64,000 nucleotides of DNA. Source: Selaginella moellendorffii. Lineage: Eukaryota; Plantae; Lycopodiophyta. The translations under genes and the position numbers were made by a program. Below the pieces are notes generated by a model, which was given only the letters and a program-made list of their open reading frames with translations, was not told the origin of the DNA and searched no databases. Of this stretch, positions 11,230-63,325 are shown piece by piece (within the stretch, counting starts at the first letter, position 1; every line of letters starts with the position of its first letter). The stretch spans positions 506,074 to 570,073 of the forward strand of contig NW_003314273.1 of the NCBI RefSeq assembly GCF_000143415.4, written 5' to 3'.

Positions 11230-13090
11230 TGGCTCTTCCTACATAAATCCACATTCTACAGCGAGGCACCGACTTGACATACTTATCTGGCAATGGCGAC
11301 ATCTTTGCCAATACACATGTCACTCATTTTGAGCAATATTGCATGTCAAATGGCATCATCGAGGATGATCACAAGCTTTGTGACTTCTTGCGATCGCTCA
11401 CTAGCCGAGCAGAAACATGGGTAGAGACACTCTTGGAGGTAGATATGGCTGACAACTCCACATTCAAAGCATCTTTCTAAGGTCACTTTGATCAGCAGTG
11501 ACCACCAAATCGCTTACTCATGGACTTGTTCGTTTTTTGGCAAGGAGCACATGAATCTGTGCCGGAATATGTGATGTGGTTTAGGTTTTACTAGAAGGAG
11601 TGTGTCCTCATCACAAATGAACCTCATGGCATCACTACATTCATCTTTGGCCTCAAGGGAAATCTCAAATGCAAAATGCTTAAGCGAGAGTTTTGGATGT
11701 GTTATGAGGCATTTGCTATAGTAGAGACTTTGGAGTGGGATCTTCTCCAACATCTCAAGATTCCTAGGGTAGAGGAGGTTTTCCTCCCACCTTCAGATGA
11801 GAGCTCATGTGCTACCATGATCCATTCTTCTCCAACCCCGCACAGTGATGATAGAGTTTCCTCAATGATCGAGAAGGCATTGTCGAAGCATGCAAGATAC
11901 AAGGAGATTATCTAGCAGCAATGATAAATTCAAGAGAAGCTACTTGAGGAGCTTAAAGCATGCTGCTTACAGTAGGCAGGGAGACTAAGATGCCCTCTTC
12001 GTTCTTGGTACTACTCGCATTGCGGTGTTATGATACACAGCATAAATAGATGTTGGAAGCTTCATTTAGAACTTCGACCACCTTTTGTCCAGCATGTTGA
12101 AGAGTAACTTCTACCAGACAACATATTTCTTCCATGGCTAGAGATAGATACCAGCAACAATTGGAGTAGAAAGCGATCAAAGACACCCTTTCGTTGAGCT
12201 GTGGAAACACTGATGCATGTCAACATAGTTTATGTTGTAGAGGACGGTTATAAGATGGCTGCTATGACTCAAGGGCACAAGAAGGTTTCTCCTTTAGCCC
12301 CAAATATTGATGGTGAGCAAGATCCAGCTCTAGTTTCTAGAACTTCCCCATCTCTCATGGCATGTAAGTTACCCCATGCTTCGGTATTTGCAATGCCACC
12401 CACATCCTTGGCCACAACTTCAAATCCAACAATTGGATATTCATCCAACTTTCAATGTGGGGTCTCTCAGCTGCCCTCCACTCTTTCTCAAGTCCCATAA
12501 GAAGTTCTTGCTTAGATTGTTGACACTTTAATCTAGATCACACTTAGTGAGCTTTTGCAATATGTACTTGGATTTACTCCTTAGCTAGAGGCTTTGCCAA
12601 GTCCACAGGCATCCCCATGGAACATCAGTATAACATCCACATCATCAACACTCAGACCACTTATGATCCTAAAGCATTCTTTGTGGAGGTCCACATCAGC
12701 GATAGATCTTTGACAGCACAAGCATTACTTGATTCTAGATCCCAGAGCAACATCATCTCCCTCAACTTGGCACTTTCTAGTGGCTTGGAAGTGGTGAGAA
12801 ACACAACTATCATCCTCAAAATGTTTGCCAATCACTGAATTGTTCCTACAAACATCTATTGGAATGTCAAGATCTTGGTGCAAGGAGTGGTTTCCATGCT
12901 AAATTTCATTGTTGTGGACTTCCAACAGTTAGGATTTGGGAAGCTGAAGGACTCCATTATCTTAGGACGGACTTACATGACAACTTGGGCCAAGGGAGAA
13001 TCAACGATTACCAACAGCATCTATGGTAGCAACTCTTCTCAATACCCATGGTCATTCTCTACTTCCATATAGCTTGTCTCAAGTGGATGC
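11230..13090 (+). pseudogene. Ty3/gypsy gag + aspartic protease relic (copy 2 at about 35050-36930)
   Basis: HFEQYC...KLCDFLRSLTSRAETW is retrotransposon gag-like. ALLDSRSQSNII is a degenerate LxDSG(S/A) protease motif and IILGRTYM is the ILGRxF motif. Many stops. Confidence 0.75.
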
Positions 13091-14904
13091 TTCTTCCATT
13101 ATTGAAGTTGACTAGGCTCTCAAGGTTTTTTTCCTGAAACTTATCGAGGATGACACGCTGTTGGAGATCCAAGTTGTTGACTACAATATGATTGACTTCT
13201 TCAACATGGACTAAACTACATCAACACTTTTGAGTACACTTTTGACTTTCCAGCTTAGTGATTACACTCTTGGTGGCACTTCTCACCCCAAACTTGCAGT
13301 CCAACCTTGCTACTCACTTGGGATACGACCATGACATAAAGGTGGCAGGCATTTTCTAGCAGCATCTCGACTTTTCCTTGGAGTTTCTCCCAACTTGGCA
13401 CTTCATCTTAGCTCTTCCCAAACTTAGGTTCATGGCTGGATCCCAACTTCATTCTGCTACAACACTCGAAGCATTCTCTGACACTATCGACACTTCACTC
13501 AACCACCAGATCTTCATCAGCGACACATGATGACTTCCATAGGTCCTTGGGGACACTTTCTACCATCCTCATGAGGCTCCCATCCTTCCAAGCAGTTCCA
13601 GCATCCTAGATTCTCTTACACTGACATTATTCACCACCTTAGGCATTTTTGATACAATCTAACACTTGAGGGTGACTAAGTTAGTTTCAGTGGCATTCTA
13701 GGCTTTTTATAGGATTCCTTGCATCCTCTTGATGCTTCCATCATCATCACCCATCACAGAAGCCACTTGCACTTATTTTTTTACTTTTTTTGTTTTTTTT
13801 GTTTTCCTTTCTGCTCTCACTCGTTTTACATCTTTCAGGTCAAGGAATTATGTGGAGAAAGTCTCTTTTAATGAACACGCTCTAGCTGTATTATTGATTG
13901 TATGAAAATTTCTCGACTCTTGTTGATTTGTGCTTCATTTCTTTAGTTTTTTTCCCTACATCAGTTCCATCCTCACATTTTCATCACCATTCTATATCAT
14001 CTATACTCTAGAATTCTCTACCACACACTACACATACCTAATAATATCTTTCACATTTTCCACCATTCATCATCCATTCATACTAGACATTTGTGGACAA
14101 CACTTCATTATAAAAGCTCTTCCAGACAAGCAAAAACACAAATCAAGATATTCTCATGCACAACATGTAAGATATTCAATAAACTAGTCACATATTGCAA
14201 CTTTCTTCTTTTTAGAACTAATTTCTTCTTCTAGTAGAATAGCTTGATTGCAAAGGGCATCCTTGAGCAGTAGTCCAGTAGTTTTTGGTGTGAGTAGTAG
14301 CTATGACTTCACATTTCACTACATTAGATTAGAGCCCATCCTTGGACACACTCAATTATATCATCCATCTACCAAAATCCCCTATCATCACTTTCTTCCA
14401 TTATAGTTCATCTTCTATTTCATAGTTACCACCATTAGGCAATACAGTCCCTATGCTTTCTTCTTCATTCTCAGCCAAAGTTTTGAGTATAAACTACATG
14501 AGTTTGAGGTTGCATTTGCATATTCACTTTCCAGAGTGTTTGAGCTTCTTTCCATTTCGTTTTTTTACTCTTTTCTTATCATTTTTCCCTTTTTTCTTAC
14601 TTTTTTGAGTATCTAATTCAACTACATAGTTTCCCATTGGGTTTTCCTTGTATCTTTGCACTTTAAACTCTTTTCCCATCTTCTACTTTCATCTTTATTT
14701 TATTTTTTATTTCCATCTCTTGTTTTCTTTCCCATTTCTCTTTGTTTCAGCAATTACCCACTCTAGACACTACATTTTAGCATATGGGAGCATCTTAGCC
14801 ATGGGTTCTTGCGCACCAAAATCTTGTGCACCCACCAATAGTTGTTTATTGCAGCATTAGCTCATTGCCACCTTCTCCTCGCATCACATGTTGCAGCTAA
14901 AGAA

Positions 14905-19500: not shown

Positions 19501-22423
19501 TATCTTCATCAAAACTAATGAAACTCGACATCAATCTTGCAGAGAGACATCTCATTTCACTAAAATCAACCAACTTCCTCCTATTAACAACTTCACATAG
19601 GTTCACCCCAACACAAATTCTCATGACCCATAATATGCTTAAGCCTCGAACATCCTTTTGCCCATTCTTTTGACATCCAACACCGACATCTGTAAAATGC
19701 AAATGGAACATCCAAGGCTTGATCACGAAGACCACATCTTCGGATATCCACATTGCACTAACACTCTTCTTCAACCACTTTCAAGATTCAATGTGAAACT
19801 AAAACATTAACAAGAAAAATGACATGGAAAATCAAGCTCTAAGGAAACTTCCTCATCACTTAAAATAACAATGTCACTTCCACTAACACAAATGCTAGTA
19901 ATGTCAATGCCTCAACCTCACACCTTCTCTATCCAACAATCTGCTTCAAGTGTTAATGGATCAACTAATGAGCTATAGCAAATGAATGCTATAACCCTTT
20001 TTTCAACACCTTATGGGCAAATCCTCAAGGAACCAAGGAACCAACTTAAGCTTAGCATAATGGACCACCATCGAGAATCCAGTCAAAGCTATTACAATGC
20101 TACTTCGTGCAAGTAGACTAGCTTCACCATCAACCACTTTGGGGTTGATCATTGTTTAACCAAGCAACTTCGTAAACACATCGCTCATTATCACATGGAT
20201 ATGATATAAGTATCACAATGATTTGATCATAAATTGAGTAACATAATGAGCAATGCCAATGTCATTACTACAAAAGTTTATGTGAGTATCAAGTGTCAAC
20301 TCGATTCAACAAAATGTAACATAAATGCCACACTCCACTGATAGCGATTTACAACACCCAAAACCACTAACTTTTGTTCACAACACAGACAAGCTCATGC
20401 CACTCTCTTTCCGACCAAACTCAAAATTAATCTAACACCAAGTTACTCAAGGAGCAATAGCAAGGTTCCCCAAAAAAGAATTGAACATTGCAACCCAAGT
20501 CTTCTAATAGCAAGCCTAGACAAAATGGTTTAGCGCTTCACTACTATCCATCCCATGACTCACCATTTACAAGACCATCATTTCCAACATGCATCAAGGT
20601 AGGGGCTCTTGATTGCATGATGTGAACATGGGCAATGGGTCACACCTCGTTGCGAATCATCTCTTCAAGAAGAGAACATGATTTATGTGTTTGATCCTTC
20701 GTCCCTGATGACTCTCCTTTCAGTCTCATCTTTGACTACACCTCAAGCTTGCTTTCACACTGCCTTCAGTCCAATCCAAGAGAAGTTTATGAAAGAGCAC
20801 GGCAATGACTACTTGAACCAATAGACTAATCCCTACAGTCTTGATTGATCCACTTGTAACCATGCCTAAGAAGGATCCACTAGTGCCATGCTAAACAGCT
20901 ATGGATTAGCATATTTTCCACTCATAGCAAACCCAGGGAAGGTTTGCTTTTACCCACGGTACATGGAACAACTCATAGAACCATTGGAACAACCCATGGA
21001 ACGACCGATAGGCTAACATTAATCCTGCCAACTCAAAACGTAACCTTGAGTTGCTAATATGCCTCACACACGAGCCCAAGCGTAAACTCGTGCTAACGGA
21101 GCATCTCAAATCCATCCTATGAGCCCAAGAGCAAGCTCACATTATTAGCTACAAAAGATAACCAAAACCATACCCAAGGAACGAATGTGAACCCTTTGCA
21201 CCAAATGTGTACCCACTCGGATCATCGTTTTCATCTCTGCGTATGCAACGAGACTAGTTGCCCAATCTCATTGAATAGTACTCGTTGAGATTCATCCTCT
21301 GATACCAAATGTAGCGCACGTGATTTTGACCCTTTATCCTATGGTGATTTACCATAGGATAACACCACGAAGCAGAACCTAAACCCTCTTTGTGCCACGT
21401 GACAGATGCCACATGTCATATGCCACGTGTCCATGCCACGTGTTCATAGGAACCCGAGGTTCAGCGCCTTGGGGAAGGAACGGTGCCAAACTCCCAAGCG
21501 TGGAGCCAAGGAGTGATGGAACCGAACCACAGAGCAACTCCTGAGCATAAAGCCCAAGGAGCGAAGGGACAGGAGCCCGGAGTGACTTGGAACAATCCTA
21601 GAGTAACCAACATTCCAATGCCAGGACCAACACACAAAACGGAGCCAAACGGAGTTTGGCGCTATTTCGGCATACCGGTGGCCTAAGGCGAGAACATGTT
21701 CTGCGTCCGGCTTAGGTCTAAGCCGGACGCAGAACAAGGATAAGCACGCAAGCGGGAGCTAGACTATGCTTTAAATTGGTCGGCCATGCCCAACTTACCC
21801 ACTATCCCTATTATACATTTGGAACCCCATAGCGCCCCCCCCCCCCCCCCCTTGAGGAACACACGCTTTGGGCTTTCACCCCAAGCCTCCCTTAGTATCA
21901 AGAGTTAGTCTCTAGGACAAACTCGAAACTTACTAAATATGGAATGTCCCTAGATTGTGAATTTAGACATGGGACAAACACCATTGTGTTCAGACCAATC
22001 TCTACATTCCGTAGATATGCCAAATGAGCAAATCTGGACACTTTCCATAAATAGTATTTGAGATCGAAATGAGACTAACACAAAGGGCATGATAGTGAAG
22101 GTGTTTAGTAGACACGGTAAGCTATCATCTAACGATATTAAGGGACCTCAATATCGCGGGGGTTCCCAAAACTAGCAAATGAAAATCAACGAATGAGTTT
22201 CTCTAACCAGGTCAAATATGCTTGACAAATAGCACGTAGGAATTCCGTCCTTATGCCCATCTGGTCAAATGCACACGCGAAGACCAGTTTCTCAACTAGT
22301 TTAGGCGGAGACTGATAACGGGCCCAGCAATACCAACCTCCTACCATCGTGGCAGTAAGGTAAGAGTGTCCATAAAGACTAGTCGACAGGTAACTTTTGA
22401 TACCCGAAGTCACATTCGCGACA
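16527..22423 (-). mobile_element. Full-structure non-autonomous LTR retrotransposon (LARD-like), 5.9 kb; LTRs 16527-17540 and 21310-22423
   Basis: TG...CA direct repeats. tRNA-iMet-type PBS TGGTATCAGAG on minus at 21297-21307. PPT AGGGGGGGGAGAG on minus at 17541-17553. Empty site at about 40431-40450. No long internal ORF. Confidence 0.92.
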
Positions 22424-22429
22424 ACTATG

Positions 22430-24230
22430 GATGGAAAGGGATTAGATAGAGACTGAAAAAAGGATATTAAAGAAGAGTGTGTGTTTTCTATGTCTTTAGG
22501 CATCCTAAGGATGCTAAAATGTGGTCATAAGATGACCACTCATGGACAGATGGCCCAATCTTTGGGAGACAACATTGTGGTATAGGTGGTTCTAGGCTAC
22601 CAATTAAATAAAGATGAATGGATATAGCCTTAGTATAATAGGATGATATGTTATTGGTATCTTTAGGTGTTTATCGTGGGATTGGACATTTGGAGCATTT
22701 GGACCAAGTGCAAAAGTTGAGTGGCATACAAGTCATTCATGAGGCTAGCAAGTCCTTAAGATGGGAATAAAATTTATAAAAATGGTGAGTGAAACTCCTC
22801 CAAATGGTCAAATGTGTGGTTAAATGATTTAATTGCTTATGTAAGGAGGATGTTTTAAATATTATTTTCTATAACCCATTTAATTTATATGAATTTTTTA
22901 TGATGCTGTATAGATTGAATAATTCTTTGGAGACTTTTTGGATGATATTCTTTACAATATGTTAAAGGTGACTATTAATTTCATTGATAATGTTTTGATC
23001 CACTTTAAGGGGACATAGGAGGAACACACTTGTGATGTTTGTAAAACATTGGGATCAGCTATAGGAAGTTAATTTGACATTGATACGGTTAAAATGCATA
23101 TATCTTAAGTATTATATTTTTCATGAAAATTTACAAATTGATTCTGACAAACTTGTGGATGTTATGAAGTTCTCTACTCCAAAGTGCGTGAACAATATGC
23201 AACACTTTCTTGGCAAGGTGTAATATCTTTTTCATGTTATTGTCTTTTTTATCATTGCAAGCATTAATGAAGTTGTTCATACTATTTTTCATCTAATTTG
23301 GGATTGTGAATAGACATTTATAGATCTTAAAGATGTGTTGACAATTTTTCTAGTTTTTGAGTATTTTAACTACACTCAACCTTTTGTAAATGCTTTTGAC
23401 ATTATCTCAAAGGTGTGTTGTTGCAAAAGAGCATGATTGTGTTTGATTAATATAATTCTATTGTGTATATTAGCTATATGTTGCAACTAATGGAGGTGAA
23501 CTACTCCATGAAAACAAAACTTTCAAAAAGATTTATGCGTATTTGCATAGTTTTTAAACATTGTTAAAAGGTGATTATATTGCAGTCTTTTCATTATTAA
23601 AGTGGAAGAATTTTGCTAGTGTAATGCATGTGATCATGGGATGAAATTTGGATATATTGTTATTGTGGATTCTTGGAACTTTCAGGAATAAATAAGGATA
23701 AAATAGCCACTAAGGGTTCTTTCATCCTTTTCCAGTTGGTTTAAGGGGAGAAAGATAGTGTGGTATCGGAGCAAATGGCACGGGTTCAAATCCTATTAAT
23801 TAGTGGTTACTTAAAAATATAATATACCCTTGAGCAACATATATTCCTACTCCTAAATTTGAAATCGTACATATTGGGCATCCATGCGTACATCCTTCCT
23901 CTTAGTAGAGTATCCACGAACGAAGGTATCCACTGTGGGAGTGCAGTATGAGTGGATGACTAGTTGCCTTACATGGAATAGCTAGTTTACACAATGAAAA
24001 GATTGGTAAATTTAATATGGAAATAGAAGTGTTGCTAATTCAATATGGAAATAGCATGATCTAACATTGCTAATAGAGTTGAGTTTACTTTTACGATTGC
24101 TATAAGTTGATAATATTAGGACCTGGGATTAATATTTGATGACCATTCTTGCACTACTTGGAGCAAAGTTTGTTAAACACTTCTGCCACATATAAATGAG
24201 ATAATAGTAATGTTATGTGGAGTATAAAGT
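22430..24230 (+). pseudogene. Ty3/gypsy RT/RNase H relic, strongly AT-decayed (also 1-657 and 40440-42239)
   Basis: Remnants FLDDILY (YxDD), EEH, FLG, QPF, VLLQ and NYS occur in the expected order upstream of the integrase relic. Confidence 0.6.
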
Positions 24231-25376
24231 TGTCACGAATGTGACTTTGGGTATCGAAAGTTACTTGTCGGCTAGTCCTTACGGACACAATTTCCTTACT
24301 GCCACGATAGCAGGAGGTCAATATTGTTGGACCCGTTATCAGTTCCCACTTGGGCTAGTTGAGTATGATCAGCAAAAAACACATAGGGGTTCCTACTTTA
24401 TATTTATCCAATCTAAGTGCATGGTTATTGACCAATTTTGGCCTAGTTTGAGAAACTTGTGTCATTGGCTTGTACTTGCTAGTATTAAGAACCTGCACAA
24501 TATTGAGCTTGGTCCCTCAATATTGCTAGATGATAGCTTATTGTGTCTGCCAAACACCCTTGCTATCATACCTTTTGTGTTAGTCTCATTTTGGTCTCAA
24601 ATGCTATTTATAGAAAGTGTTTAAATTTATTTATTTGGCATATCTACGGAATGTAGAGATTCTCATGAACACAATGATGTTCGTCTCGTGTCCAAATTTG
24701 CAATCTAAGAACATTCCATATTTAGTAAGTTTCAAGCTTGTTCTAGAGACTAACTTTTGGTACTAAGGGAGGCTTGGGGTGAAAGCCCAAAGCATGTGTT
24801 CCTCAAAGGGGGGGGAGGGAGGCTATGGGGAGTTTTAAATGTATAGTAGGGATAGTGGGTAGGTCGTACATAGCCGATCAACCTGAGGCATAGTTTAACT
24901 CCTACTTACATGCTTGTCTTTGTTTTGCATTTGGCTTAGGTCTAAGCCCAAGTTCCACACCATATTAGCTAGTGAAATACCCATGTCTTTATGTTAGGCC
25001 ACCGGTATTCCAAAATAGCACTAAATTCCGTTTGGCTCCGTTTTGCATGCTGATCCTGTCATTAGGATGTTGGTTGCTCTATGACTGTTTCAAGTCATTC
25101 TAGGCTCCTATCCTTTCACTCCTTTGGCTATATGCTTGGGAGTTGCTTTGTGGTCTAGTTCCGTCACTTAGCTCCATGCTTGGTAGTTTGGGATTTGTTC
25201 CTTCGTTTAGTGGCCCAAGGCCTTGAACCTCGGGTTCCACACCACTGTCCTTTGGACACGTGGCATGTGACACATGGCATATGACACATGGCACATGGAG
25301 GGTTTAGATTCTGCTTCATAGTGTTATCCTATGGTAAATCACCATAGGATAGGAGGTAAAAACCAAGTGCGCTACA
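24231..25376 (+). mobile_element. Solo LTR, copy 2
   Basis: aaagt|TGTCAC...GCTACA|aaagt. Confidence 0.9.
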
Positions 25377-25840
25377 AAAGTGGATGATTGGTATTTGTTT
25401 ATTTTCCCAATTTTATAGTGTATAATTTACCTAATGGGCTCTTTGCTTAGTAGAAAGGATTGTATCAAGTGTTGTGGCAAGTTAGATTCCAAATTTATGA
25501 TCATCACCAATTTATGTCATCATTGTGGTGAACTTGGATAACTAAGGATATATCATATTTTCACAAGTGTTTATCATCCTCAAATGAATGATTTGGTGAA
25601 ATAGCTGATTGGACCTTTAAAAGGATGATCACAATGTATAAGAATTTTTAATATTGAGATTAGGATTGTTATTTTTCATGTCTTCAATATGTGTATATCA
25701 TAGGGGTATAGGGTGTTTTACCATATAAAGTATTATATATGGTCATGATCTAACATTACTAATAAAGTTGAGTTTACTTTTACAATTGCTCTGAGTTGCT
25801 AGGACCTGGGATTAATATTTGATTACCATTCTTGCACTAC

Positions 25841-32960: not shown

Positions 32961-35900
32961 ATGGGGAGTTAGTGTTCGTAAAAGATATTAAGTGTGTACC
33001 AAATCTTCATTTTGTTGCACAAAGGGTTTGGAGTTTGATATAAGCTATAAATATTTTTTTTCTAATTTGCCAACTTACCTTTTTTATTCGACCACGTTTG
33101 CTTTGGCATTAGTTAAGTTCCCTTGCCAAGGTCCCCACTTATTATACCATCTTTTACTTGGTCCTACTTGGATTTAGCTTCCTCACTACACAAGTAATGA
33201 AGTGTTAGCCATGCATCTACAGATTCGTAATATTTCTCTTAATCCCTCTCCTCAGGTGAGTTTGGACTTAAGATTTAATTACAATCCCTATAACCACAAC
33301 CAGCTAAACACACAAAGCCTCTAGGTTTTTTATATGCCTAGGTATAGCAAAACTTAATCACAAAACCTTCTAAATCCCAAGACTTGGGTGCATTTCTTGT
33401 TTCGAGTGTTGCAACACAAATTTATTGTTGCTTATCTTTACGTCACATGTTATAGCCAGAGAAACCACTCTTACTCCCACTTCTACCCTTGCTCCTATTT
33501 TTACTTCCACTTTTACTTCTACTCCCGGTCTTACTATTATTGTTGCTCCCACTCTTACTCTCACTCCTACTCTCTAGTTACAGGTATGGGTGTTTTGAGA
33601 GATAGGGAGAGGAAATTTTGATTCTCAAAATATTCCAAATAGTAAAATTCCACAAAGGCTATATCAAAGGTCCTCCCTATTTCCTCTGGCAATTAAGTTT
33701 GGAATTACGGTTTTGTGAATTTGTATGTGAGGGATGGATCCGTGGTTAGGGCTGAAAGATGACCTAAAACTTAGTGAACTCAACATGAATAAGTTAGTTT
33801 AGTTTTCTTGAAAGAATGGAGAGTTTGTTTTAGGAAATTGAGAGAAATCTTGAGTTCTAGGGGTTAGATTTATATTCTTAGAGACCCTAGGACCATTAGG
33901 GGTTTCAACTTCCATGAATTTAGAGTGTAAATTTAAAGATTTTTCTCGTTCTTACATTAATTTTCTACATTACTTCTTTCCACTTGGTTTTCTAGTGATT
34001 TCTCATTATTAGTATATTGATTCTGGTTTTTCTTTCTTTGGGTCGATGCGACTTGGCATCCTCTTTCCAACAAGCTAAAGAGCACCTTGTTTTGTGGAGG
34101 ATTTAATTGCTAATTTAATGAAATTTTATCCATCACAGTCCTCTGTTTTTCATAGCAAATCTTTCAACACTCTAAGCTTGTGATTTTGGGACTGATTCAA
34201 GAATTTTTTTTTCTGGACATGTAAATCTAAAGACAAGCTTTTTTTAGTGTCCTTTCTTGGTAGCCAATTCGCTTTAAGTTATGACATGGAGTAGTTTTTC
34301 TCTTACGGCGCTTCATAGCTCAAATTTGCAAGTTTCTAGCTTAATCTTGAGGGAATTTGAGGCGTCGTTCTCATGGAAATCATTACAGCCATGTTATTAC
34401 CTTTTACCAATGTTAAAAATGAGTGTTTCTTGTACTAGGGAGTGCATTTTCTTTTGTTTTCTTTCTTATTGTCTAGAATTTAATGTTTGAATCAATTTTT
34501 TTTTGAGATTTTAGGCATTTTAACTCATGGTTTTGGTTTCATTCTCTTGGTTTGAGTATAAACTTTTAAACAAGTCCATCCACACCCATTTTTGTATGCA
34601 AAGTCAAGAGATTTCCATGCAAATGTTTTCCTCTTAAGCATTTTGAGTATTGGAGTTTAATTGTTTCTATTTTCCCCCTTTTCTTTGCAATATTTTTTTC
34701 TTTTGTCATGAGAAATTGGCATTTGCAAGGGTGAGAGTGATTTTATTTGGGAAAATCTACATGAGGATACTCTTTTATTTGGAGTTATCCCATTTAGATA
34801 CTTTACTCTCACACAAGTCAAAGTTCTTTGTGCGTTGTATTTTCCACAACCTGGCATCTACTGCACAGTGGACATTTTATACTAGTTCACACTTGTTCCA
34901 GTTAGAGATGGCAACTAGCAAACTTCCATACAGTGCCTAGGGTATGGGGACATTTTTCACATCTTTTACGAGAGCTTGATTATCAAACTACTCTTTTTGA
35001 TAAGGAGGATTCATCATTCATTACAGATATCGAGTCAGGGAGTCCACCATCCATGGCTCTTCCTACATAAATCCACATTCTACAGCGAGGCACCGACTTG
35101 ACATACTTATCTGGCAATGGCGACATCTTTGCCAATACACATGTCACTCATTTTGAGCAATATTGCATGTCAAATGGCATCATCGAGGATGATCACAAGC
35201 TTTGTGACTTCTTGCGATCGCTCACTAGCCGAGCAGAAACATGGGTAGAGACACTCTTGGAGGTAGATATGGCTGACAACTCCACATTCAAAGCATCTTT
35301 CTAAGGTCACTTTGATCAGCAGTGACCAACAAATCGCTTACTCATGGATTTGTTTGTTTTTTGGCAAGGAGCACGTGAATCTGTGCTAGAATATATGATG
35401 TGGTTTAGGTTTTACTAGAAGGAGTGTGTCCTCATCACAAATGAACCTCATGGCATCACTATATTCATCTTTGGCCTCAAGGGAAATCTCAAATGCAAGA
35501 TGCTTAAGCGAGAGTTTTGGATGTGTTATGAGGCATTTGCTGTAGTAGAGACTTTGGAGTGGGATCTTCTCCAACATCTCAAGATTCCTAGGGTAGAGGA
35601 GATTTTCCTCCCACCTTCAGATGAGAGTTCATGTGCTACCATGATCCATTCTTCTCCAGCCCCACACAGTGATGATAGAGTTCCCTTAATGATCGAGAAG
35701 GCATTGTCGAAGTATGCAAGATACAAGGAGATTATCTAGTAGCAATAATAAATGCAAGAGAAGCTATTTGAGGAGCTTAAAGCATGCTGCTTACAGTAGG
35801 CAGGGAGACTAAGATGCCCTCTTCGTTCTTGGTACTACTCGCATTGTAGTGTTATGATACACAGCATAAATAGATGTTGGAAGCTTCATTTAGAACTTCG

Positions 35901-38900
35901 ACCACCTTTTGTCCAGCATGTTGAAGAGTAACTTCTACCAGACAACATATTTCTTCCATGGCTAGAGATAGATACCAGCAACAATTGGAGTAGAAAGCGA
36001 TCAAAGACACCCTTTCGTTGAGCTATGGAAACACTGATGCATGTCAACATAGTTTATGTTGTAGAGGACGGTTATAAGATGGCTGCTATGACTCAAGGGC
36101 GCAAGAAGGTTTCTCCTTTAGCCCCAAATATTGATGGTGAGCAAGATCCAGCTCTAGTTTCTAGAACTTCCCCATCTCTCATGGCATGTAAGTTACCCCA
36201 TGCTTCGGTATTTGCAATGCCACCCACATCCTTGGCCACAACTTCAAATCCAACAATTGGATATTCATCCAACTTTCAATGTGGGGTCTCTCAGCTGCCC
36301 TCCACTCTTTCTCAAGTCCCATAAGAAGTTCTTGCTTAAATTGTTGACACTTTAATCTTGGTGAGCTTTTGCAATATATATCTGGTTTTACTCCTTAGCT
36401 AGAGGCTTTGCCAAGTCCACAGGCATCCCCATGGAACATCAGTATAACATCCACATCATCAACACTCATACCACTTATGATCCCAAAGCATTCTTTGTGG
36501 AGGTCCACATCAGCGATAGATCTTTGACAGCACAAGCATTACTTGATTCTAGATCCCAGAGCAACATCATCTCCCTTAACTTGGCACTTTCTAGTGGCTT
36601 GGAAGTGGTGAGAAACACAACTATCATCCTCAAAATGTTTGTCAATCACTGAATTGTTCCTACAAGCATCTGTTGGAATGTCAAGATCTTGGTGCAAGGA
36701 GTGGTTTGTATGCTAAATTTCCTTGTTGTGGACTTCCAACAGCTAGGATTTAGGAAGCTGAAGGACTTTATTATCTTAGGACGGACTTACATGACAATTT
36801 GGGCCAAGGGAGAATCAATGATTACCAACAGTATTTATGTAGCAACTCTTCTCAATACCCATGGTCATTCTTTACTTCCATCTAGCTTGTCTCAAGTGGA
36901 TGCTTCTTCCATTATTGAAGTTGACTAGGCTCTCAAGGTGTTTTTCCTGAAACTTATCGAGGATGACACGCTGTTGGAGATCCAAATTGTTAACTACAAT
37001 ATGATTGACTTCTTCAACATGGACTGGACTACATCAACACTTTTGAGTACACTTTTGACTTTCCAGCTTAGTGACTACACTCTTGGTGGCACTTCTCACC
37101 CCAAACTTGTAGTCCAGCCTTGCTACTCACTTGGGATACGACCATGACATAAAGGTGGCAGGCATTTTCTAGCAGCATCTCGACTTTTCCTTGGAGTTTC
37201 TCCCAACTTGGCACCTCATCTCAGCTCTTCCCAAACTTAGGTTCATGGTTGGATCCCAACTTCATTCTGCTACAACAATCGAAGCATTCTCTGACACTAT
37301 CGACACTTCACTCAACCACCAAATCTTCATCAGCTACACATGATGACTTCCATAGGTCCTTGGGGACACTTTCTACCATCCTCAGGAGGCTCCCATCCTT
37401 CCAAGCAGTTCCAGCATCCTAGATTCTCTTACAGTGACATTATTCACCATCTTAGGCATTTTTGATGCAATCTAACACTTGAGGGTGACTAAGTTAGTTT
37501 CAGTGGCATTCTAGGCTTTTTATAGGATTCCTTGCATCCTCTTGATGCTTCCATCATCATCACCCATCACAGAAGCCACTTGCACTTTTTTTTTTTCTTT
37601 TTTTGTTTTTTTTTTGTTTTTCTTTCTGCTCTCACTCTTTTTACATCTTTTTTCAGGTCAAGGAATTATGTGGAGAAAGTCTCTTTTAATGAACATGCTC
37701 TAGCTGCATTATTGATTGTATAAAAATTTCTCGACTCTTATTGATTTGTGCTTCATTTCTTTAGTTTTTTTCCCTACATTAGTTCCATCCTCACATTTTC
37801 ATCACCATTCTATATCATCTATACTCTAGAATTCTCTACCACACACTACACATACCTAATAATATCTTTCACATTTTCCACCATTCATCATCCATTCATA
37901 CTAGACATTTGTGGACAACACTTCATCATAAAGGCTCTTCCAGATAAGCAAAAACACAAATCAAGATATTCTTATGCACAACATGTGAGATATTCAATGA
38001 ACTAGTCACATACTGCAACTTTCTTCTTTTTAGAACTAATTTCTTCTTCTAGTAGAATAGCCTGATTGCAAAGGGCATCCAACTGCTTTCAAAGGTGTGG
38101 TTAACAAAGGCAACACCCTTTTCTTCTAACTCAAATCATAGGTGAAGCAATTTGCCACCTTTTGAGCAGTAGTCCAGCAGTTTTTGGTGTGAGCAATAGT
38201 TATGACTTCACATTTCACTACATCAGATTAGAGCCCATCCTTGGACACACTCAATCATATCATCCATTTACCAAAATCCCCTATCATCACTTTCTTTCAT
38301 TATAGTTCATCTTCTATTTTATAGTTACCACCATTAGGCAATACAGTCCCTATGCTTTCTTCTTCATTCTCAGCCAAAGTTTTGAGCACAAACTACATGA
38401 ACTTGAGGTTGCATTTGCATATTCACTTTCCAGAATGTTTGAGCTTCTTTCCATTTGGTTTTTTTATTCTTTTCTTCTCATTTTTCCCTCTTTTCCTACT
38501 TTCTTGAGTATCTAATTCAACTACATAGTTTCCTATTGGGTTTTCCTTGTATCTTTGCACTTTAAACTCCTTTCCCATCTTCTACTTTCATCTTTATTTT
38601 ATTTTTTATTTCCATCTCTTGTTTTCTTTCCCATTTCTCTTTGTTTCAGCAATTACCCACTCTAGACACTACATTTTAGCATATGGGAACGTCTTAGCCA
38701 TGGGTTCTTGCGCACCAAAATCTTATGCACCCACCAATAGTTGTTTATTGCAGTACTAACTTATTGCCACCTTCTCTTCGCATCACATGTTGCAGCTAAA
38801 GAAGCAACTCTTACTCTTGCTCCTAACCCTACTCTTGCCCCGCTCCTACTCTTACCTCTACCCCTATTTTTATTCCTACTCCTACTACTGCTCCTGCTCC

Positions 38901-41582
38901 CACTACTACTCTTACTCCTACTCCCCAGTTGTAGATATGGGTGTCTTGAGAGAGAGGGAGAGGATATTTTGATTCTTAAAATATTCCAAATGATTGTATA
39001 AAAACCATGTGAGGGTGAAATATCAAGGGTCCTCCTCATTTTCTCTTGTTGTTGAGTTTGAAGCTGCAGCTTTGTGAGTTTATATGTGAGGGATGGATCC
39101 ATAATTGGGGCTAAAAGATGCCCTAATAGATACTCTTTCCACCTTTTGCCTTTGGGTGCCCTAGACATGTGGCTAGAGCAAGGTTTTGATAAGCAATGCC
39201 AGGTATCCAAGTAGGTAGTGCCACCCACACTTAGATTGGGAGCATTGACTATTTGATCTCCTGGGGGAGTTAGAGTTAGATCTTGAATATTTCACCAAGT
39301 TACCCCACTTGTCTGTCTATATTCACTTTAGTCTTGGACTCCTCAATGGTTATATCATCACCCACCACATGGGTATAACCTTCCTTAGCCACATTGGTTT
39401 TACTAGCCAAATTAGTTCCACTGAAGTCCTCCCCTTACTATCCTTTTAAAGCTCACTTGGGAAATAATTGCTTTGGGATTTCATTTCAGATTCAAACTCA
39501 AACTTGGACTAGGTCTTGGACTCAGTCTTGGACTTGGTCTTGGACTCGGTCTGAGTCTTGGCCTCTATTTTGGTCCCAGTCCCAGTCCCAGTCCCTGTCT
39601 CAAGCTCCATTTTGGGCTCCATTTTGGGCTCCATCTCAGACTCCTTCTTAGACTCCATCTAGACTTGATCTTGGGTCCATCTCAAACTTTATCTTATGCT
39701 CCATCTTGGGTCCATTTTGGGTCCATCTCGGACTCTTTCTCGGACTCCATCTTGCATCCATCTCAAACTTCAATTCGGACTCTATCTTAGACTCTTCGGA
39801 TTCCATCTCAAGTCCATCTCGGACTCAATTCTGACACTTCCACGTGTCATATGTTGATCCTTTTGTTTCCCTTTTCTAGAGGCTTGCTTATTGATTGCTT
39901 TATGCTTTCAATGGGAGTTCCACTCTTGCTCTCAACTTTTTGAGTTAAATCTTTTAGTCCAAATGTGTTACACTTGTTTAGCTTCCACTTCAACCACTAC
40001 CACATGGCACCCTTTTGGCTCCACTCTAGATAGCTATTGTTTGAGGATGCAAGAAGAGCAGAGATAAAAAGGTTTTAATTTCCCTTAAACTATTTAAATG
40101 GTCTAGAGTTTAGGGTTTAAGGATTTGTGTCTTATAGAAGTGTAAGTGTTATTACCTACTTGGATATTTGGTATGGCTTATCGAAACCTCGCTCTAGCCA
40201 TATGGCTAGGGCACCTAGAGGCAGAAGGTGGGGAGAGTACCCGCAATGTTTGCATTGGGCTATAGTGTTTTGAAATATTATCCTAAAGTCCTAGACTGTG
40301 GAAAGGAAAAGGAGTAATCCTCTTGTGTAGTGACTAAACATATAATCACGTGGCAAGGAAGTTTTAGAGGTGAATAGGACTTAGTGGTCAGGCCTTCAGG
40401 CCTTTGGGCTAACCCAGTGGTAGTGTTGGCAAGCACAACTATGGATGGAAAGGGATTAGATAAAGACTGAAAAAGGGATATTAAAGAAAGGTGTTTTCTA
40501 TGTCTCTAGGCATCCTAAGGATGTTAAAATGTGGTCATAAGATGACCACTCATGGATAGATGACTCAATCTTTGGGAGACAGCATTGTGGTATAGGTAGT
40601 TCTAGGCTACCAATTAAATAAAGGTGAATGGATATAGCCTTAGTATAATAAGATGATATGTTATTGGTATCTTTAGGTGTTTATCGTGGGATTGGACATT
40701 TGGAGCATTTGGACCAAGTGCAAAAGTTGAGTGGCATACAAGTCATTCATGAGGATAGCAAGTCCTTCAGATGGGAATAAAATTTATAAAAATGGTGAGT
40801 GAAACTCCTCCAAATGGTCAAATGTGTGGTTAAGTGATTTAGTTGCTTACATAAGGAGGATGTTCTAATATTACTTTCTATAACCCATTTAATTTATATG
40901 AATTTTTTATGATGCTGTATAGATTGAATAATTCTTTGGAGACTTTTTGGATGATATTCTTTACAATATGTTAAAGGTGACTATTAATTTCATTGATAAT
41001 GTTTTGATCCACTTTAAGGGGACATAGGAGGAACACACTTGTGATGTTTGTAAAACATTGGGATCAGCTATAGGAAGTTAATTTGACATTGATACGGTTA
41101 AAATATATATATCTTGAGGATTATATTTTTCATGAAAATTTACAAATTGATTTTGACAAACTTGTGGATGTTATGAAGTTCTCTATTCCAAAGTGCATGA
41201 ACAATATGCAACACTTTCTTGACAAGGTGTAATATCTTTTTCATGTTATTGTCTTTTTTATCATTGCAAGCATTAATGAAGTTGTTCATACTATTTTTCA
41301 TCTAATTTGGGATTGTGAATAGACATTTATAGATCTTAAAGATGTGTTGACAATTTTTCTAGTTTTTGAGTATTTTAACTACACTCAACCTTTTGTAAAT
41401 GCTTTTGACATTATCTCAAAGGTGTGTTGTTGCAAAAGAGCATGATTGTGTTTGGTTAATATAATTCTATTGTGTATATTAGCCATATGTTGCAACTAAT
41501 GGAGGTGAACTACTCCATGAAAACAAAACTTTCAAAAAGATTTATGCGTATTTGCATAGTTTTTAGACATTGTTAAAAGGTG

Positions 41583-44500
41583 ATTATATTGCAGTCTTTT
41601 CATTATTAAAGTGGAAGAATTTTGCTAGTGTAATGCATGTGATTATGGGATGAAATTTGGATATATTGTTATTGTGGATTCTTGGAACTTTCAGGAATAA
41701 ATAAGGATAAAATAGCCACTAAGGGTTCTTTCATCCTTTTCCAGTTGGTTTAAGGGGAGAAAGATAGTGTGGTATCGGAGCAAATGGCACGGGTTCAAAT
41801 CCTATTAATTAGTGGTTACTTAAAAATATAATATACCCTTGAGCAACATATATTCCTACTCCTAAATTTGAAATCGTACGTATTGGGCATCCATGCGTAC
41901 ATCCTTCCTCTTAGTAGAGTATCCACGAACGAAGGTATCCACTGTGGGACTACGGTATGAGTGGATGACTAGTTGCCTTATATGGAATAACTGGTTTACA
42001 CAATAAAAGGATTAGTAAATTCAATATGGAAATAGAAGTGTTGCTAATTCAATATGGAAATAGCATGATCTAACATTGCTAATAGAGTTGAGTTTACTTT
42101 TACGATTGCTATAAGTTGATAATATTAGGACTTGGGATTAATATTTGATGACCATTCTTGCACTACTTGGAGCAAAGTTTGTTAAACACTTCTGCCACAT
42201 ATAAATGAGATAATAGTAATGTTATGTGGAGTATAAAGTTGTCATGAATGTGACTTTGGGTATCGAAAGTTACTTGTCGGCTAGTCCTTACGGACACAAT
42301 TTCCTTACTGCCACGATAGCAGGAGGTCAGTATTGTTGGACCCATTATCAGTTCTCACTTGGGATAATTGAGAAATTAATCAATAACCATGCACTTAGAT
42401 TGGATAAATATAACGTAGGAACCCCTATGTGTTTCTTGCTGAGCATACTCAGCCTAGTTTGAGAAACTTGTGTCATTGGCTTGTACTTGCTAGTATTAAG
42501 AACCCGCATAATATTGAGTTTGGTCCCTCAATATTGTTAGATGATAGCTTATCGTGTCTACCAAACACTCTTACTATCATACCTTTTGTGTTAGTCTCAT
42601 TTTGGTCCCAAATGCTATTTATAAAAAGTGTCCAAATTTGCTTATTTAGCATATCTACGGAATGTAGAGATTCTCATGAACACAATAATGTTCGTCTCGT
42701 ATCCAAATTTGCAATCTAAGAACATTCCATATTTAGTAAGTTTTAAGCTTATTCTAGAGACTAACTTCTGGTACTAAGGGAAGCTTGGGGTGAAAGCCCA
42801 AAGCGTGTGTTCCTCAAAGGGGGGGGGATGGAGGCTATGGGGGGTTCCAAATGTATAGTAGGGATAGTGGGTAGGTCGCACATGGCTGATCAACCTGAGG
42901 CATAGTTTAACTCTTGCTTACATGTTTCTCTTTGTTTTGCATTTGGCTTAGGTCTAAGCCCAAGTTCCACACCATACTAGCTAGTGAAGTACCCATGTCT
43001 TTATGTTAGGCCACCGGTATTCCAAAATAACACTAGACTCCGTTTGGCTCCGTTTTGCATGCTGATCTTGTCATTAGGATGTTGGTTGCTCTATGACTGT
43101 TTCAAGTCACTCTAGGCTCCTGTCCCTTCACTCCTTTGGCTATATGCTTGGGAGTTGCTTTATGGTCCAGTTCCGTCACTTAGCTCCATGCTTGGTAGTT
43201 TGGGATTTGTTCTTTCGTTTAGTGGCCCAAGGCCTTGAACCTCAGGTTCCACACCACTTGTCCTTTGGACACGTGGCATGTGACACATGGCATATGACAT
43301 ATGGCACATGGAGGGTTTAGGTTCCACTTCATAGTGTTATCCTATGATAAATCATTATAGGATAGGAGGTAAAAACCAAGTGCGCTACAAAAGTGGATGA
43401 TTGGTATTTGTTTATTTTCCCAATTTTATAGTGTATAATTTACCTAATGGGCTCTTTGCTTAGTAGAAAGGATTGTATCAAATGTTGTGGCAAGTTAGAT
43501 TCCAAATTTATGATCATCACCAATTTATGTCATCATTGTGGTGAACTTAGATATTATAAAACTGATTATTCACAATTGAAGAATAAGTAATAAAGAAAAA
43601 AGAATAGTTAATCTTTTATTAGCATTAAGTTGAATACTAAAAAGTTGCAAAATTTGCAAAGTAAAGATGACAAAAAAGACTATTCTGATTAAAGGAAGAG
43701 ACTTTTAATCACTATTTGATAACTCAACTATATGTAGAATAATTAAAGGAACCTCAAGAGAAGGCATAACATAGTTTATGCAAGGTTAAACATCTTTGTC
43801 TTTGTTATTTAGTGCTAGGTCATAACAGTGTATTATTTGAAGTTGTTAAAGTTGGGAAGCTAGACAATTTGCATCCCTCATAAAGCATTGTTTGTAATAC
43901 AGAGAAATACTGTTCTTCTTTATTCAGAATTCAAGATTGCTTCTTTAGTGGGATATGGCTGAAATCAAATATCTCCTTGAGACCGAAAATAAGTTTCTCT
44001 GCATCTTGATCTCCATCTGATGACGATTCTTCCACCATATAAGCAATAGCATCATCCCTAATATTGTCCTTGAACTCCACATGCTCTCCATCACTAAAAA
44101 CAGCTTCTCCTCCTTCCTCTGAACCACATGAGCTTGACGATCTTGTTACCAAGCACACATACTTCTGCCACCAATTTGCTTTTTGAAACTGTTGTATGAC
44201 ATTGAATTTAGCAGACACAAAACTTTTTATTTGTTCTTTTTTAGATACAACATCCTATGAGTCCATTCTGAGTTCATGCAGCTCAACAGCAAACATGACC
44301 AAAATGAAGAAACGAGAAATGAAGTTGGCTCCGAGCTCGAGAAGTTGGCTGCAAGGATTGGTCAACTGGAGGCCAGTGCTCGGACTCTAGCATCGGAGAA
44401 GCCAACTCTCAAGAGTCAAATCCAGAAGTTGGATCTCCAAGCAAGTTGAGCAGCACAGGAGGAGGCCACTAAAGCTATAGACCAGTTAAGTCGAGAGAAG

Positions 44501-59903: not shown

Positions 59904-61256
59904 ATGGATTTTTCTATCAACAAGGTTCTTCCCCACTCGCCTGCATGGCGGGGGAAAAGCGTGCTGTTTGATAAGAAAGTAGAAGTTACTAGGGACGAGC
60001 CCCTCGACTTTTCAGCAGCGTGGAAGCAGGAGGCTTTCAGAATGCATCTCCGGTGTGGGGGCATTGACCAGGCCGAGAAACTCTTCAGCAAGCTCCACAC
60101 GCAGGATGTTATGCAGTACACCCTGCTCATCTCGGCTCTGGTCAGGGAAGGAAGATTTCACGACGCAGTCGGCTGGTTCCAGAGAATGCTGCTAGAAGGG
60201 AGAAAGCCAGATCGAGTTTGCTTCGTAGCAGTCGTGGGTGCTTACGGTGGGATTGGGAACTTGGACAAGGCAAAGTTTATCCATGGCTACCTCTACAGGT
60301 CTGGCTACGAGGCTGATATCATAGTCGGGACTGCTCTCGTCAACTTGTATGCCAAGTGCGGTAGCATCCGGAACGCTCGGCTCATGTTCGGCAGGATCAC
60401 TTCGAGCTCGCCAGTGCTGTGGAACGCGATGATCACTGCGTATACCCAGAGCGGGTATGTGGAGCTCTACTGCGGCGAGGTTGTCAGCTTGTTTCAGCGG
60501 ATGTGCTTGCAAGGGATCAGAGGGAACCAGGTGACGTTCGTCGCCGTGCTAAACGCCTGCGTTGGCCCGTCCATGGCGGAGGAAGTAGAATGGATACATG
60601 GGCTGGTGACCGAGAGTGGTTTTCAAGGCGAGCTTCTCGTCCAGACCGCGTTGATCAAGGCTTATGGGAGAGCAAAGCTCGCGGGGATTGCTACGAGGAT
60701 CTTCGAGGGGATAGTGGAGCGGGACATCGTTGCCTGGAACACTATGGTGGCGGCTTATGAAGCCGCGGGTCACTTCCGCGAGGCCGTGCACACCTTCTGG
60801 CAAATGCGAGCCGAGAACCGAGTAACTCCAAACAGGATCTCCTTCGCGGCCGTGCTGAGAGCTTGTGCCGGTCTCCAGGACTCGAGGCAGACCGAGAGAG
60901 TTCATGGTCTTGCGATGGAGTTGGGGGTGGCTGGGGACGAAGAGGTGCAAGCGAGCCTCCTGGATGCGTATCTGGCGTGCGGCTCTCCAAGCGGAGCTCT
61001 CGGGATCTTTGGCTCGATGGTATCGCGGCCTCCTCGTTCGTGGAGCTCTGCCTTGCGAGCCGCGGGAGACGTGGTGGTGTTTAGATTGATGATGCTGGAT
61101 CAAGGGGCAGCAGCAGTGGATGGAGTTACGCTGGGTGCTGCGCTTGGATTCTGTGAAACACGGGCTGATGTAGAGCTCGTCCGTGCGTGTGCTAAAGAAG
61201 CCGGGCTGGAATTGGCAGAGGAACTGGCTTGGCAAGATCCTGAAACGTTTGCATGA
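59904..61256 (+). CDS. PLS-type PPR protein, degenerate C-terminus without clear E/DYW domain
   Basis: Intronless 450 aa; TALVNLYAKCGS, WNAMITAY, VTFVAVLNAC motifs. Confidence 0.9.
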   Translation: MDFSINKVLPHSPAWRGKSVLFDKKVEVTRDEPLDFSAAWKQEAFRMHLRCGGIDQAEKLFSKLHTQDVMQYTLLISALVREGRFHDAVGWFQRMLLEGRKPDRVCFVAVVGAYGGIGNLDKAKFIHGYLYRSGYEADIIVGTALVNLYAKCGSIRNARLMFGRITSSSPVLWNAMITAYTQSGYVELYCGEVVSLFQRMCLQGIRGNQVTFVAVLNACVGPSMAEEVEWIHGLVTESGFQGELLVQTALIKAYGRAKLAGIATRIFEGIVERDIVAWNTMVAAYEAAGHFREAVHTFWQMRAENRVTPNRISFAAVLRACAGLQDSRQTERVHGLAMELGVAGDEEVQASLLDAYLACGSPSGALGIFGSMVSRPPRSWSSALRAAGDVVVFRLMMLDQGAAAVDGVTLGAALGFCETRADVELVRACAKEAGLELAEELAWQDPETFA

Positions 61257-61505
61257 AAAGACAGAATTTAAAAAAGCTCTCTTTAGTAAACCTTTCTTTA
61301 TCTTTGTCGTCAATGTCCAAATGCCAGTGAGCTAGCAAGACAAAATGGTTGTCAATTAACGAAATTCTTTTCTTTAAGGAAGAATATTTATTTTAAAATA
61401 TTTTTATACTTGCTTTATTCTGTGCTCTTAAAAAACACTTTCACAACAAACAATGCTGGGGTAAATAAAAGATGGGTTAGATGAAATTGCATCTATAGCT
61501 AAGTC

Positions 61506-61917
61506 ATGTCTACCCAATTAAAATTTTCTATTTTCATCATAGTTTCTTTTATATTGGTGAGCGAATAATTTTTATTATGTTTTTTAACCCATTTCTTCTT
61601 TGTAGTGGATTAATATTTTTGGTTATGGGGATGAATGTAATGGGCAATTTAATCTATCTTGTAGTCTTTTGACATGTATTAACAGGAATTTAACAGCTTC
61701 ATGTTTAACAACTGATATCACCATTAGTGTTCAAACACATATCCAAATAGAAAATTGTGTTCCAGAGGTAACAAATTGTAGTGTGGGTAATGCTGGTGAG
61801 TTTACATGTGTGGATGCCGGAGGTAATGAGATAACTCAAGAAGTATTTTGTGAAATTGTAAATACTAATGGTCAACTCTCTTGTGTACCACATGATCCAG
61901 AGGAGCCATTTACTTGA
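61506..61917 (+). CDS. Small secreted Cys-rich protein, cyanovirin-N homologue (CVNH)-like; exons 61506-61556 and 61606-61917, 120 aa
   Basis: A 49-nt GTGAG..TAG intron joins signal-peptide-like MSTQLKFSIFIIVSFIL in frame to WINIFGYGDECNGQFNLSCS...LTASC...IVNTNGQLSC. Confidence 0.72.
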
Positions 61918-62649
61918 ATAATAAATAAAGTATTAAATTATTCTAAATTTATTATGTATGGTAGTAGATATAATAGTTTTTATTGTAGTATATTTTTAAA
62001 TTTCATCAAGGTTTTAATTTAATCAAAATAATTATTTCATTAAAATGATATTAAAGTTAAACTGATTAGCTTATTACTAATATTAAACTACTGATAATGT
62101 TATTATTAACCACTCAACATCTCCCTAGTGAGTGTTCTTCACTGTTTGACAAAGATCTCTTTGATCTAATTAGATCTAGGATAAATCAATTGAGCTGGTG
62201 GGATTGAGCAACAGTTTCTTCTCAATCAGATTCAAAGAGCCATTGTAAGTGTTGGAAGCATTCGTTACCGAGATTTGAAATTATATTATGCTCTAAATTG
62301 AGTTCTAGTTAAATTCATATAATATTTGATTAAATGCAAAAATATAAAGAGAATACGGTTAAGGTACCACATGCTAAACCATATGTTACTCAGAAGAATG
62401 AAAGATATAGAACTTTTGCCAATGTTTCTTCATGCTCTGGACTTAATATGGCTCTAAGCCCAGCTCTAGTGTTTGGAATAATAGTGACTTCTTTCTTGAT
62501 TCCTTAACATGCACAGGCAGAAGAGATAAAACTTGGAGAATATCCAGGCATATTCCTGGATATCAATATTCTTTTATCATAGAAGAAACAGATCACCTTG
62601 GGCTTGTATACCACCTTCGTACCAACTTCTACTCATAGCTGGAGGGCCA

Positions 62650-63325
62650 ATTTGGCCTAGGATTATGCCACTTTCCAGGCGGAGGTGTTTAAGAAGCATT
62701 TCAAGCAAGGGTTTCTTGGCTTGGTCTTTACCTCACATGGTAGTGGCTAATCCCACTTCACCACGAAGCACTTCCGGAGCATCACTGCATAGGCAATGCT
62801 GGCTTGGTAAATCCACTGCGTCAGGGTCACGCGTAATGTAGGGCTCTGTTGTTTTTCTCATGTACTTGCAAATGTTGTCAAGATCAGGCCTCAACACCGA
62901 GATCATGCTCACAAGCCCCAAGTTCGAGATGATCTCTTGTCCCTCACCCCAAGCTCGACGATCACGACCAGGAGCTTGTGACCGTACGGCCTCACAAGCT
63001 CGTCCAGTTTTTACAAAATCTTTGACTAGAAGGTGGCATTCTTGATCTTCGAGCGCTAGCGGGAGTATCTGGTTGAAAAGCTGGCCAAACTCTCGAGCTT
63101 TGTCATAGCCAGCTCCCTCTCTTGCCATTCTTCACCTTGAGTAGTAGCTTCATGATCTGCCTCTCGATCATGTCTCACCCTCAGACATGTCCTATTACTT
63201 GACATCCTCAGCCTTCATCGGCAAACCATCCAGATTTTTCTTCAAAACACCATACTCTTGACTGTGATCCTCCTCAGGGATCGTATACGCTGGAACCAGA
63301 GTTGGAGTTTCCACAGTTGGCAAGC
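62650..63325 (-). pseudogene. SF3B1: Splicing factor 3B subunit 1 (SF3b155) fragmentary pseudogene
   Basis: YTIPEED, IMKLLLKVKNG, DKAREFG, LFNQILP, LEDQECHLLVK, EGQEIISNL and MISVLRPDLDN follow the order of the SF3B1 HEAT-region motifs, with internal deletions, frameshifts and stops. Confidence 0.82.

Follow-up and report, generated by a model that had tools for sequence, protein, structure and literature searches.

The gene and its tandem paralogue

We analysed a stretch of 64,000 nucleotides from the lycophyte Selaginella moellendorffii (contig NW_003314273.1), which we call the window. Near its end, on the plus strand at positions 61506-61917, lies a small two-exon gene. We consider it probable that this is an unannotated nuclear gene for a small, predicted secreted protein with nine cysteines and that it is one of a tandem pair. 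The annotated genes which flank it are a PPR gene upstream and a thioredoxin gene 2.2 kb further on. Since the annotation of scaffold GL377577.1 (GCA_000143415.2) has no gene called between these two, the small gene is unannotated. The gene and its immediate flanks comprise the following features.

61506 to 61556, plus strand: exon 1, the start codon (ATG at 61506) and 16 further codons, MSTQLKFSIFIIVSFIL; n- and h-regions of a signal-peptide-like leader, mean Kyte-Doolittle hydropathy 1.74
61557 to 61605, plus strand: phase-0 GT-AG intron of 49 nt, GTGAGC...TTGTAG (GT at 61557, AG at 61604-61605)
61606 to 61917, plus strand: exon 2, 103 codons and TGA (61915-61917), encoding the last 8 residues of the leader and all of the mature protein
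61630 to 61914, plus strand: predicted mature protein of 95 amino acids, starting DEC..., predicted all-beta, nine cysteines; cleavage placed by the small residues at positions -3 and -1
61918 to 61949, plus strand: short 3' flank, conserved as far as 61949 in the blastn alignment with the paralogue; AATAAA at 61920-61925
61380 to 61452, plus strand: weakly conserved upstream stretch, possibly promoter-proximal; local alignment with the upstream 150 nt of the paralogue gives a weak signal (z 2.5, 2.8% of shuffles as good)

The spliced product has 120 amino acids, and all of its nine cysteines are encoded by exon 2. The TAG of the acceptor is itself an in-frame stop, so that the frame of exon 2 begins directly behind it. 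The codon periodicity of exon 2 is coding-like, with GC contents of 0.447, 0.417 and 0.175 at the first, second and third codon positions. The sequence-only reading which preceded our analysis had proposed this hidden gene with its 49-nt intron and its product of 120 residues and nine cysteines. We confirm the coordinates, and a paralogue of the same architecture strengthens the model. The reading had also remarked that the open reading frame track shows only an 82-amino-acid fragment; indeed the list, made with the bacterial code, contains just a TTG-start piece of this length at 61669-61917. The genome of Selaginella moellendorffii is known for short introns, and the span of the neighbouring annotated genes barely exceeds their coding length. 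Introns here therefore measure some tens of bases, and an intron of 49 nt is unremarkable.

The paralogue is located 8.1 kb downstream on scaffold GL377577.1, 5.6 kb past the end of the window. It occupies positions 19689-20126 of the region L001, which is identical to the window over their overlap (an L001 coordinate equals the window coordinate minus 49903). Its exon 1 is again hydrophobic and 17 codons long (MFKKLNIFLFLIIYSLL), its exon 2 has 103 codons, and its intron (GTGAGT...CCTTAG) agrees in phase and position with that of the window gene. The two genes are 71% identical in amino acid sequence and 76% in DNA sequence, and all nine cysteines are kept. About 29 residues differ between the paralogues, mostly within a few patches. 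Over their first 38 nt the two introns share 84% identity (z 7.1), and this part includes a TAAC motif that resembles a branch site; the up- and downstream flanks of the two genes are barely alignable. Like the window gene, the paralogue is AT-rich, CpG-depleted and unannotated and has PPR-derived sequence upstream. It differs in its longer intron (75 nt against 49 nt) and in that the PPR copy upstream is just a fragment. The surroundings of the window gene which bear on this comparison are the following.

59904 to 61256, plus strand: annotated, intronless PPR gene, 450 amino acids, Pfam PPR/PPR_2 at E 1e-27; GC content at third codon positions (GC3) 0.647, ratio of observed to expected CpG 0.89; context, outside the small gene
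60799 to 61096, plus strand: co-duplicated segment of the PPR gene, forming the left-hand part of the duplicated block; blastn identity of 83-84% to L001 18882-19105, and tblastn of the PPR protein matches the same fragment
61260 to 62550, no strand: AT-rich, CpG-depleted island containing the small gene; GC 0.24-0.33, ratio of observed to expected CpG 0.25 with an excess of TpG/CpA

The fragment at L001 18882-19105 (window-equivalent 68785-69008) is a dead piece of the PPR gene, located upstream of the paralogue and colinear with it. It shows that PPR sequence and small gene were duplicated together. The tandem pair is the product of a local block duplication which included part of the upstream PPR gene.

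A second pair of copies was found through the PPR protein, whose 90% cluster includes XP_024541001.1 on scaffold GL377565.1. A region of this scaffold, L002 (GL377565.1 5725486-5746817), has the same gene order as the window region at about 96-98% identity, and we interpret it as the assembly's second haplotype. Its PPR product has 443 amino acids compared with 450 in the window. L002 carries both small genes intact (11597-12008 and 19889-20320); their splice sites are the same, and each has nine cysteines. In total there are four open copies, two genes on each of two haplotypes, and the hydrophobic exon 1 of 17 codons is present in both genes and both alleles. The intron of the window gene measures 49 nt in both alleles, that of the paralogue 75 and 72 nt. 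In exon 2 the window gene is 95% identical in amino acid sequence to its allele, with one silent and five replacement changes, and four of five replacements lie at positions which also differ between the paralogues. The paralogue shows two silent and three replacement changes in exon 2. Between the haplotypes the coding sequence of the paralogue is diverged by 1.7% compared with about 10% in its flanks, thus about six times less.

Constraint on the coding sequence

We simulated neutral divergence in 20,000 runs, in which the 65 substitutions observed in the first 98 codons were distributed randomly, following an AT-biased spectrum. The frame stayed open in 2.4-4% of the runs and the nine cysteines were kept in 0.15%; both together occurred at a frequency of 5e-5. 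The mean neutral amino acid identity was 55% compared with the 70% observed over the first 98 codons, and none of the 20,000 runs reached the observed value. The Nei-Gojobori dN/dS ratio between the paralogues (nonsynonymous to synonymous substitution rates) is 0.555, with a dS of 0.405. The substitutions are furthermore clustered, as 55 codons are untouched where 46.2 +/- 2.4 are expected (p 3e-4). The clustered changes therefore point to a scaffold that does not vary and to other positions that change freely. The scaffold of the family consists of the nine cysteines and the invariant blocks DECNGQF, LTASCLT and ISVQT.IQI; a minority of positions vary freely, also between the haplotypes.

The length of the open reading frame is by itself weak evidence, since 3.2% of the shuffles of the island give a frame of at least 103 codons. 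The gene stands above chance because of its codon periodicity and, decisively, because of its conservation in the paralogue and in the second haplotype.

The predicted protein

The leader probably ends with G-Y-G before the aspartate encoded at 61630; the paralogue has AIG before the invariant DEC. Exon 1 has nearly the same mean hydropathy in both genes (1.74, paralogue 1.73) and encodes a basic residue near the start, and the residues at positions -3 and -1 are small in all copies. The hydrophobic N-terminus that the sequence-only reading had noticed is thus supported as signal-peptide-like by its hydropathy, by the residues at -3 and -1 and by the same exon in the paralogue.

The mature chain is short (95 amino acids) and carries a cysteine framework common to the family, C-x7-C-x4-C-x8-C-x17-C-x6-C-x9-C-x13-C-x10-C. 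The nine cysteines are invariant in all four copies at amino acid identities of 68-95%. The protein with this pattern matched no family in Pfam.

The copies differ in N-x-S/T sequons, of which the window copy has three and the paralogue none. Two asparagines of the window allele, at 61687-61689 and 61774-61776 (exon-2 residues 28 and 57), each create such a sequon. The other haplotype has tyrosine and serine at these positions, matching the paralogue. Possible explanations of this difference are a derived gain of glycosylation sites, gene conversion and ancestral polymorphism.

Base composition

The small gene was described in the sequence-only reading as lying in an AT-rich stretch between GC-richer genes. 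We find the same: the GC content is 0.24-0.33 from about 61250 to 62600 compared with 0.59-0.61 in the gene just upstream, and the DNA of the small gene itself has a GC content of about 29%. The ratio of observed to expected CpG is 0.25 in the island of the window (61260-62550) and 0.14 around the paralogue (L001 19400-20284) compared with 0.89 in the PPR gene, with an excess of TpG/CpA. GC3 is 0.175 in the window gene and 0.117 in the paralogue compared with 0.647 in the PPR gene. CpG depletion together with low GC3 is the signature of long-term C-to-T erosion, and the data point to two islands which are sharply bounded domains of such erosion.

Other features of the window

Scans of the island for promoters and terminators of bacterial type, for Rfam families and for repeats gave nothing relevant. 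The window holds twelve other AT-rich open frames of at least 100 codons. When 53 further AT-rich open frames of the window were compared with Pfam, the only matches were exons of the RING and FPG genes, and no CVNH gene was among them.

Between the small gene and the thioredoxin gene, an open reading frame of 131 amino acids lies on the minus strand (window 62733-63128) and has no call in the annotation of this haplotype. At the matching place of the second haplotype a gene of 147 amino acids without a Pfam family is called (L002 12853-13296). In the first part of the window (1-46000) a unit of about 23.6 kb is present roughly twice, with partial third copies. Examples are 1-1422, which corresponds to 23574-24995 (99%), 9934-14262, which corresponds to 33759-38080 (96.5%), and 22421-25540, which corresponds to 40435-43553 (95%). 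This repetition represents a large recent duplication or nested retroelements.

Discussion

We suggest that the small gene works in the following steps. The AT-rich spacer behind the PPR gene would be transcribed, and the transcript would be spliced across the 49-nt phase-0 intron. The resulting precursor of 120 amino acids would be directed into the secretory pathway by its leader of about 25 residues, and a beta-rich mature protein of 95 residues would remain. Up to four disulfides could staple this protein and leave one cysteine unpaired, and it might bind a ligand or act as an antimicrobial protein outside the cell. A rigid scaffold combined with freely changing positions is typical of extracellular binding or defence proteins, and it is this pattern of variation which leads us to take the product as a putative secreted protein of this type. 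At the level of sequence the pair is best filed as an orphan, lineage-restricted family of predicted secreted cysteine-rich proteins. The present analysis newly contributes the evidence for a block duplication, the finding of four intact copies, the tests of selection and the negative results on CVNH membership.

Several points weigh against a functional secreted protein. The leader, to which exon 1 contributes 17 residues and exon 2 contributes 8 (about 25 in all), is probably a signal peptide, as judged by hydropathy and the -3/-1 rule only. The secondary structure in the AF2 models consists of strands only, and with pLDDT values of 44 and 55 the fold is of low confidence. The family is known from two genomic loci only. 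Pooled over both genes, exon 2 shows 8 nonsynonymous to 3 synonymous allelic differences; since these are mostly replacements, recent constraint may be relaxed, and the counts are too low to tell relaxed constraint from diversifying change. Finally, the C-to-T erosion fits methylated DNA and therefore possibly silent or only conditionally expressed genes.

The sequence-only reading went further and assigned the protein to the cyanovirin-N-like (CVNH) lectins. The small gene could indeed encode a strongly diverged CVNH lectin in which domain A, that is, the N-terminal sheet and the C-terminal hairpin, is kept; we regard this as possible, though doubtful. In such a protein, and we put this forward with the same reserve, domain B would be shortened and re-stapled by the extra disulfides, and mannose-type glycans would be bound via one site. 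Cyanovirin-N is built from two symmetrically related domains and has the disulfides Cys8-Cys22 and Cys58-Cys73 (PMC11952781). In exon 2, cysteines 19 and 33 are spaced by 14 residues like Cys8 and Cys22; a candidate second pair, 58 and 68, is spaced by 10 compared with 15. The motif F-x2-S-C-x9-L-T-A-S-C is present in all four copies but in only 2.5e-5 of composition-preserving shuffles. The motif I-[VI]-N-x-N-G-x-L near the C-terminus, also present in four of four copies, occurs in 1.2e-3 of the shuffles. Both patterns were defined post hoc after the sequence of cyanovirin-N, and we treat these two short cyanovirin-like motifs as a lead only. The claim that both ends of the protein match cyanovirin-N is thus correct in so far as the resemblance is real and kept in every copy, but it is statistically insufficient.

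The searches for relatives do not support this descent. With exon 2, the mature part, each half and the paralogue, hmmscan against Pfam-A found no family at a limit of E 10, where the HMMER filters pass roughly E < 0.1-0.25. The sequence-only reading had itself named the absence of a CVNH profile match as a result that would refute it; the Pfam comparison, made exon by exon, returned no such match. A scan of NCBIfam was equally negative. Among the PDB chains no CVNH chain was found at E up to 10, neither by phmmer with the whole exon 2 and each half nor with a profile of the two paralogues. The best PDB sequence match was asteropsin F, a knottin-like peptide from a sponge, which is insignificant (E 0.15 over 24 residues). 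An exhaustive HMMER search of 1.84 billion representative proteins detected no true homologue, and no annotated CVNH protein was among its matches. It gave two matches, both long tandem-repeat proteins whose scores are summed over 7-15 weak stretches; we rejected them as spurious, one being a junk repeat translation and the other bacterial HYR_4C repeats. A word-index protein search found nothing, whether the query was exon 2 or the two-sequence alignment. Feature searches of the ESM Atlas, over all clusters and over the named clusters only, gave nothing usable, and neither these nor the shape searches returned a CVNH cluster. A tblastn search of plasmids for a bacterial CVNH protein yielded chance matches only.

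The CVNH fold has two domains, each composed of a three-stranded sheet and a hairpin, and its pseudo-twofold structure derives from tandem sequence repeats of about 50 residues; such a repeat is likewise not found. Smith-Waterman alignments between the two halves of the protein, made within each paralogue and from one to the other, gave z values of -0.9 to 0.5 relative to shuffles, thus about zero. The structure prediction and fold search that the sequence-only reading had proposed gave low-confidence models, in which cyanovirin-N scores at noise level and is tied with unrelated beta-propeller blades. Without a Pfam match for either paralogue or either half, without a CVNH chain in the PDB and without a repeat, we do not uphold the assignment to the CVNH family.

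A more far-reaching scenario is the following, which we offer tentatively and regard as doubtful. The family would be restricted to Selaginella and would have either a fold of its own or a cyanovirin fold reduced to domain A plus a new disulfide-stapled mini-domain. It would have been kept for long by selection that conserves the scaffold and varies the surface, in DNA that is CpG-depleted and looks silenced. If true, such a family would fit a conditionally expressed binder of the immune type.

Alternatively, the pair could be a relic. The two genes would have been functional for most of the time since the duplication and would now be silent in methylated, C-to-T-eroding DNA and drifting to pseudogenes. 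The low CpG ratios and GC3 values of both genes given above favour this explanation. In addition, the allelic ratio of replacement to silent changes, 8:3, is close to the neutral expectation, and neither the NCBI annotation nor the protein collections contain the gene. However, none of the four copies has lost its start codon, splice sites, frame or any of the nine cysteines, divergence between the haplotypes is about six times lower in the coding sequence of the paralogue than in its flanks, and the protein is clearly constrained between the paralogues. We therefore think it rather improbable that the pair is already on its way to decay.

The sequence-only reading also considered that the gene arrived by horizontal transfer or on a transposable element. 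Its base composition is sharply unlike that of the neighbouring genes, and CVNH domains are said to be patchily distributed, which is suggestive of transfers (PMC6362431). However, the AT-rich composition equals that of the local intergenic DNA, and the position and phase of a spliceosomal intron are conserved in both paralogues. No terminal inverted or long direct repeats bound the gene, and the island has neither repeats of this kind nor an Rfam match. The copies share only the gene and the PPR fragment, as in a segmental duplication. Finally, no bacterial, fungal or viral homologue was found in the exhaustive HMMER search or by tblastn against plasmids. Thus, with a conserved intron and a local block duplication including the PPR fragment, a foreign or mobile origin is very unlikely.

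An origin of the gene model by chance, from a random open frame and a fortuitous GT-AG pair in AT-rich DNA, can be dismissed: island shuffles and the twelve other AT-rich frames of the window make length unremarkable, but the paralogue keeps the whole architecture at 24% nucleotide divergence (joint neutral probability of about 5e-5), and codon periodicity, clustered substitutions and four intact copies refute it.

The analysis adds a well-supported small gene family which the annotation of a reference plant genome has missed. It illustrates how AT-rich, CpG-depleted genes for small, putatively secreted proteins are skipped by standard gene callers in this lycophyte. If the link to cyanovirin is true, the pair shows how a lectin fold of two domains can be pared down and stapled anew, which would be relevant to lectin engineering and to the patchy distribution of the CVNH family. 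If it is false, what remains is an orphan family of cysteine-rich proteins. In both cases the finding is a modest one, a lineage-specific, predicted secreted protein.

Comparison with known proteins

The CVNH family (PF08881, IPR011058) is known in lycophytes and ferns. Its members are small, secreted, beta-rich and disulfide-bonded, and the product of the small gene resembles them in these respects, secretion, beta structure and disulfides being predicted in its case. Binding of Man-alpha-1,2-Man or high-mannose glycans is characteristic of the CVNH family. Common to both are also the N-terminal segment G-x-F-x2-S/T-C ... L-T-x-S/T-C with the spacing of Cys8-Cys22 and the C-terminal motif I-x-N-x-D/N-G-x-L. 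In contrast to the family, the small protein has no profile or sequence match and no tandem repeat, its second half is shorter, and it carries five extra cysteines.

The second group for comparison are the small secreted cysteine-rich proteins of plants. The nine-cysteine pattern sets the present protein apart, as it has no Pfam match. However, the pair shares with this group the short precursor, the N-terminal leader, a conserved cysteine framework with a variable surface, local tandem duplication and poor annotation.
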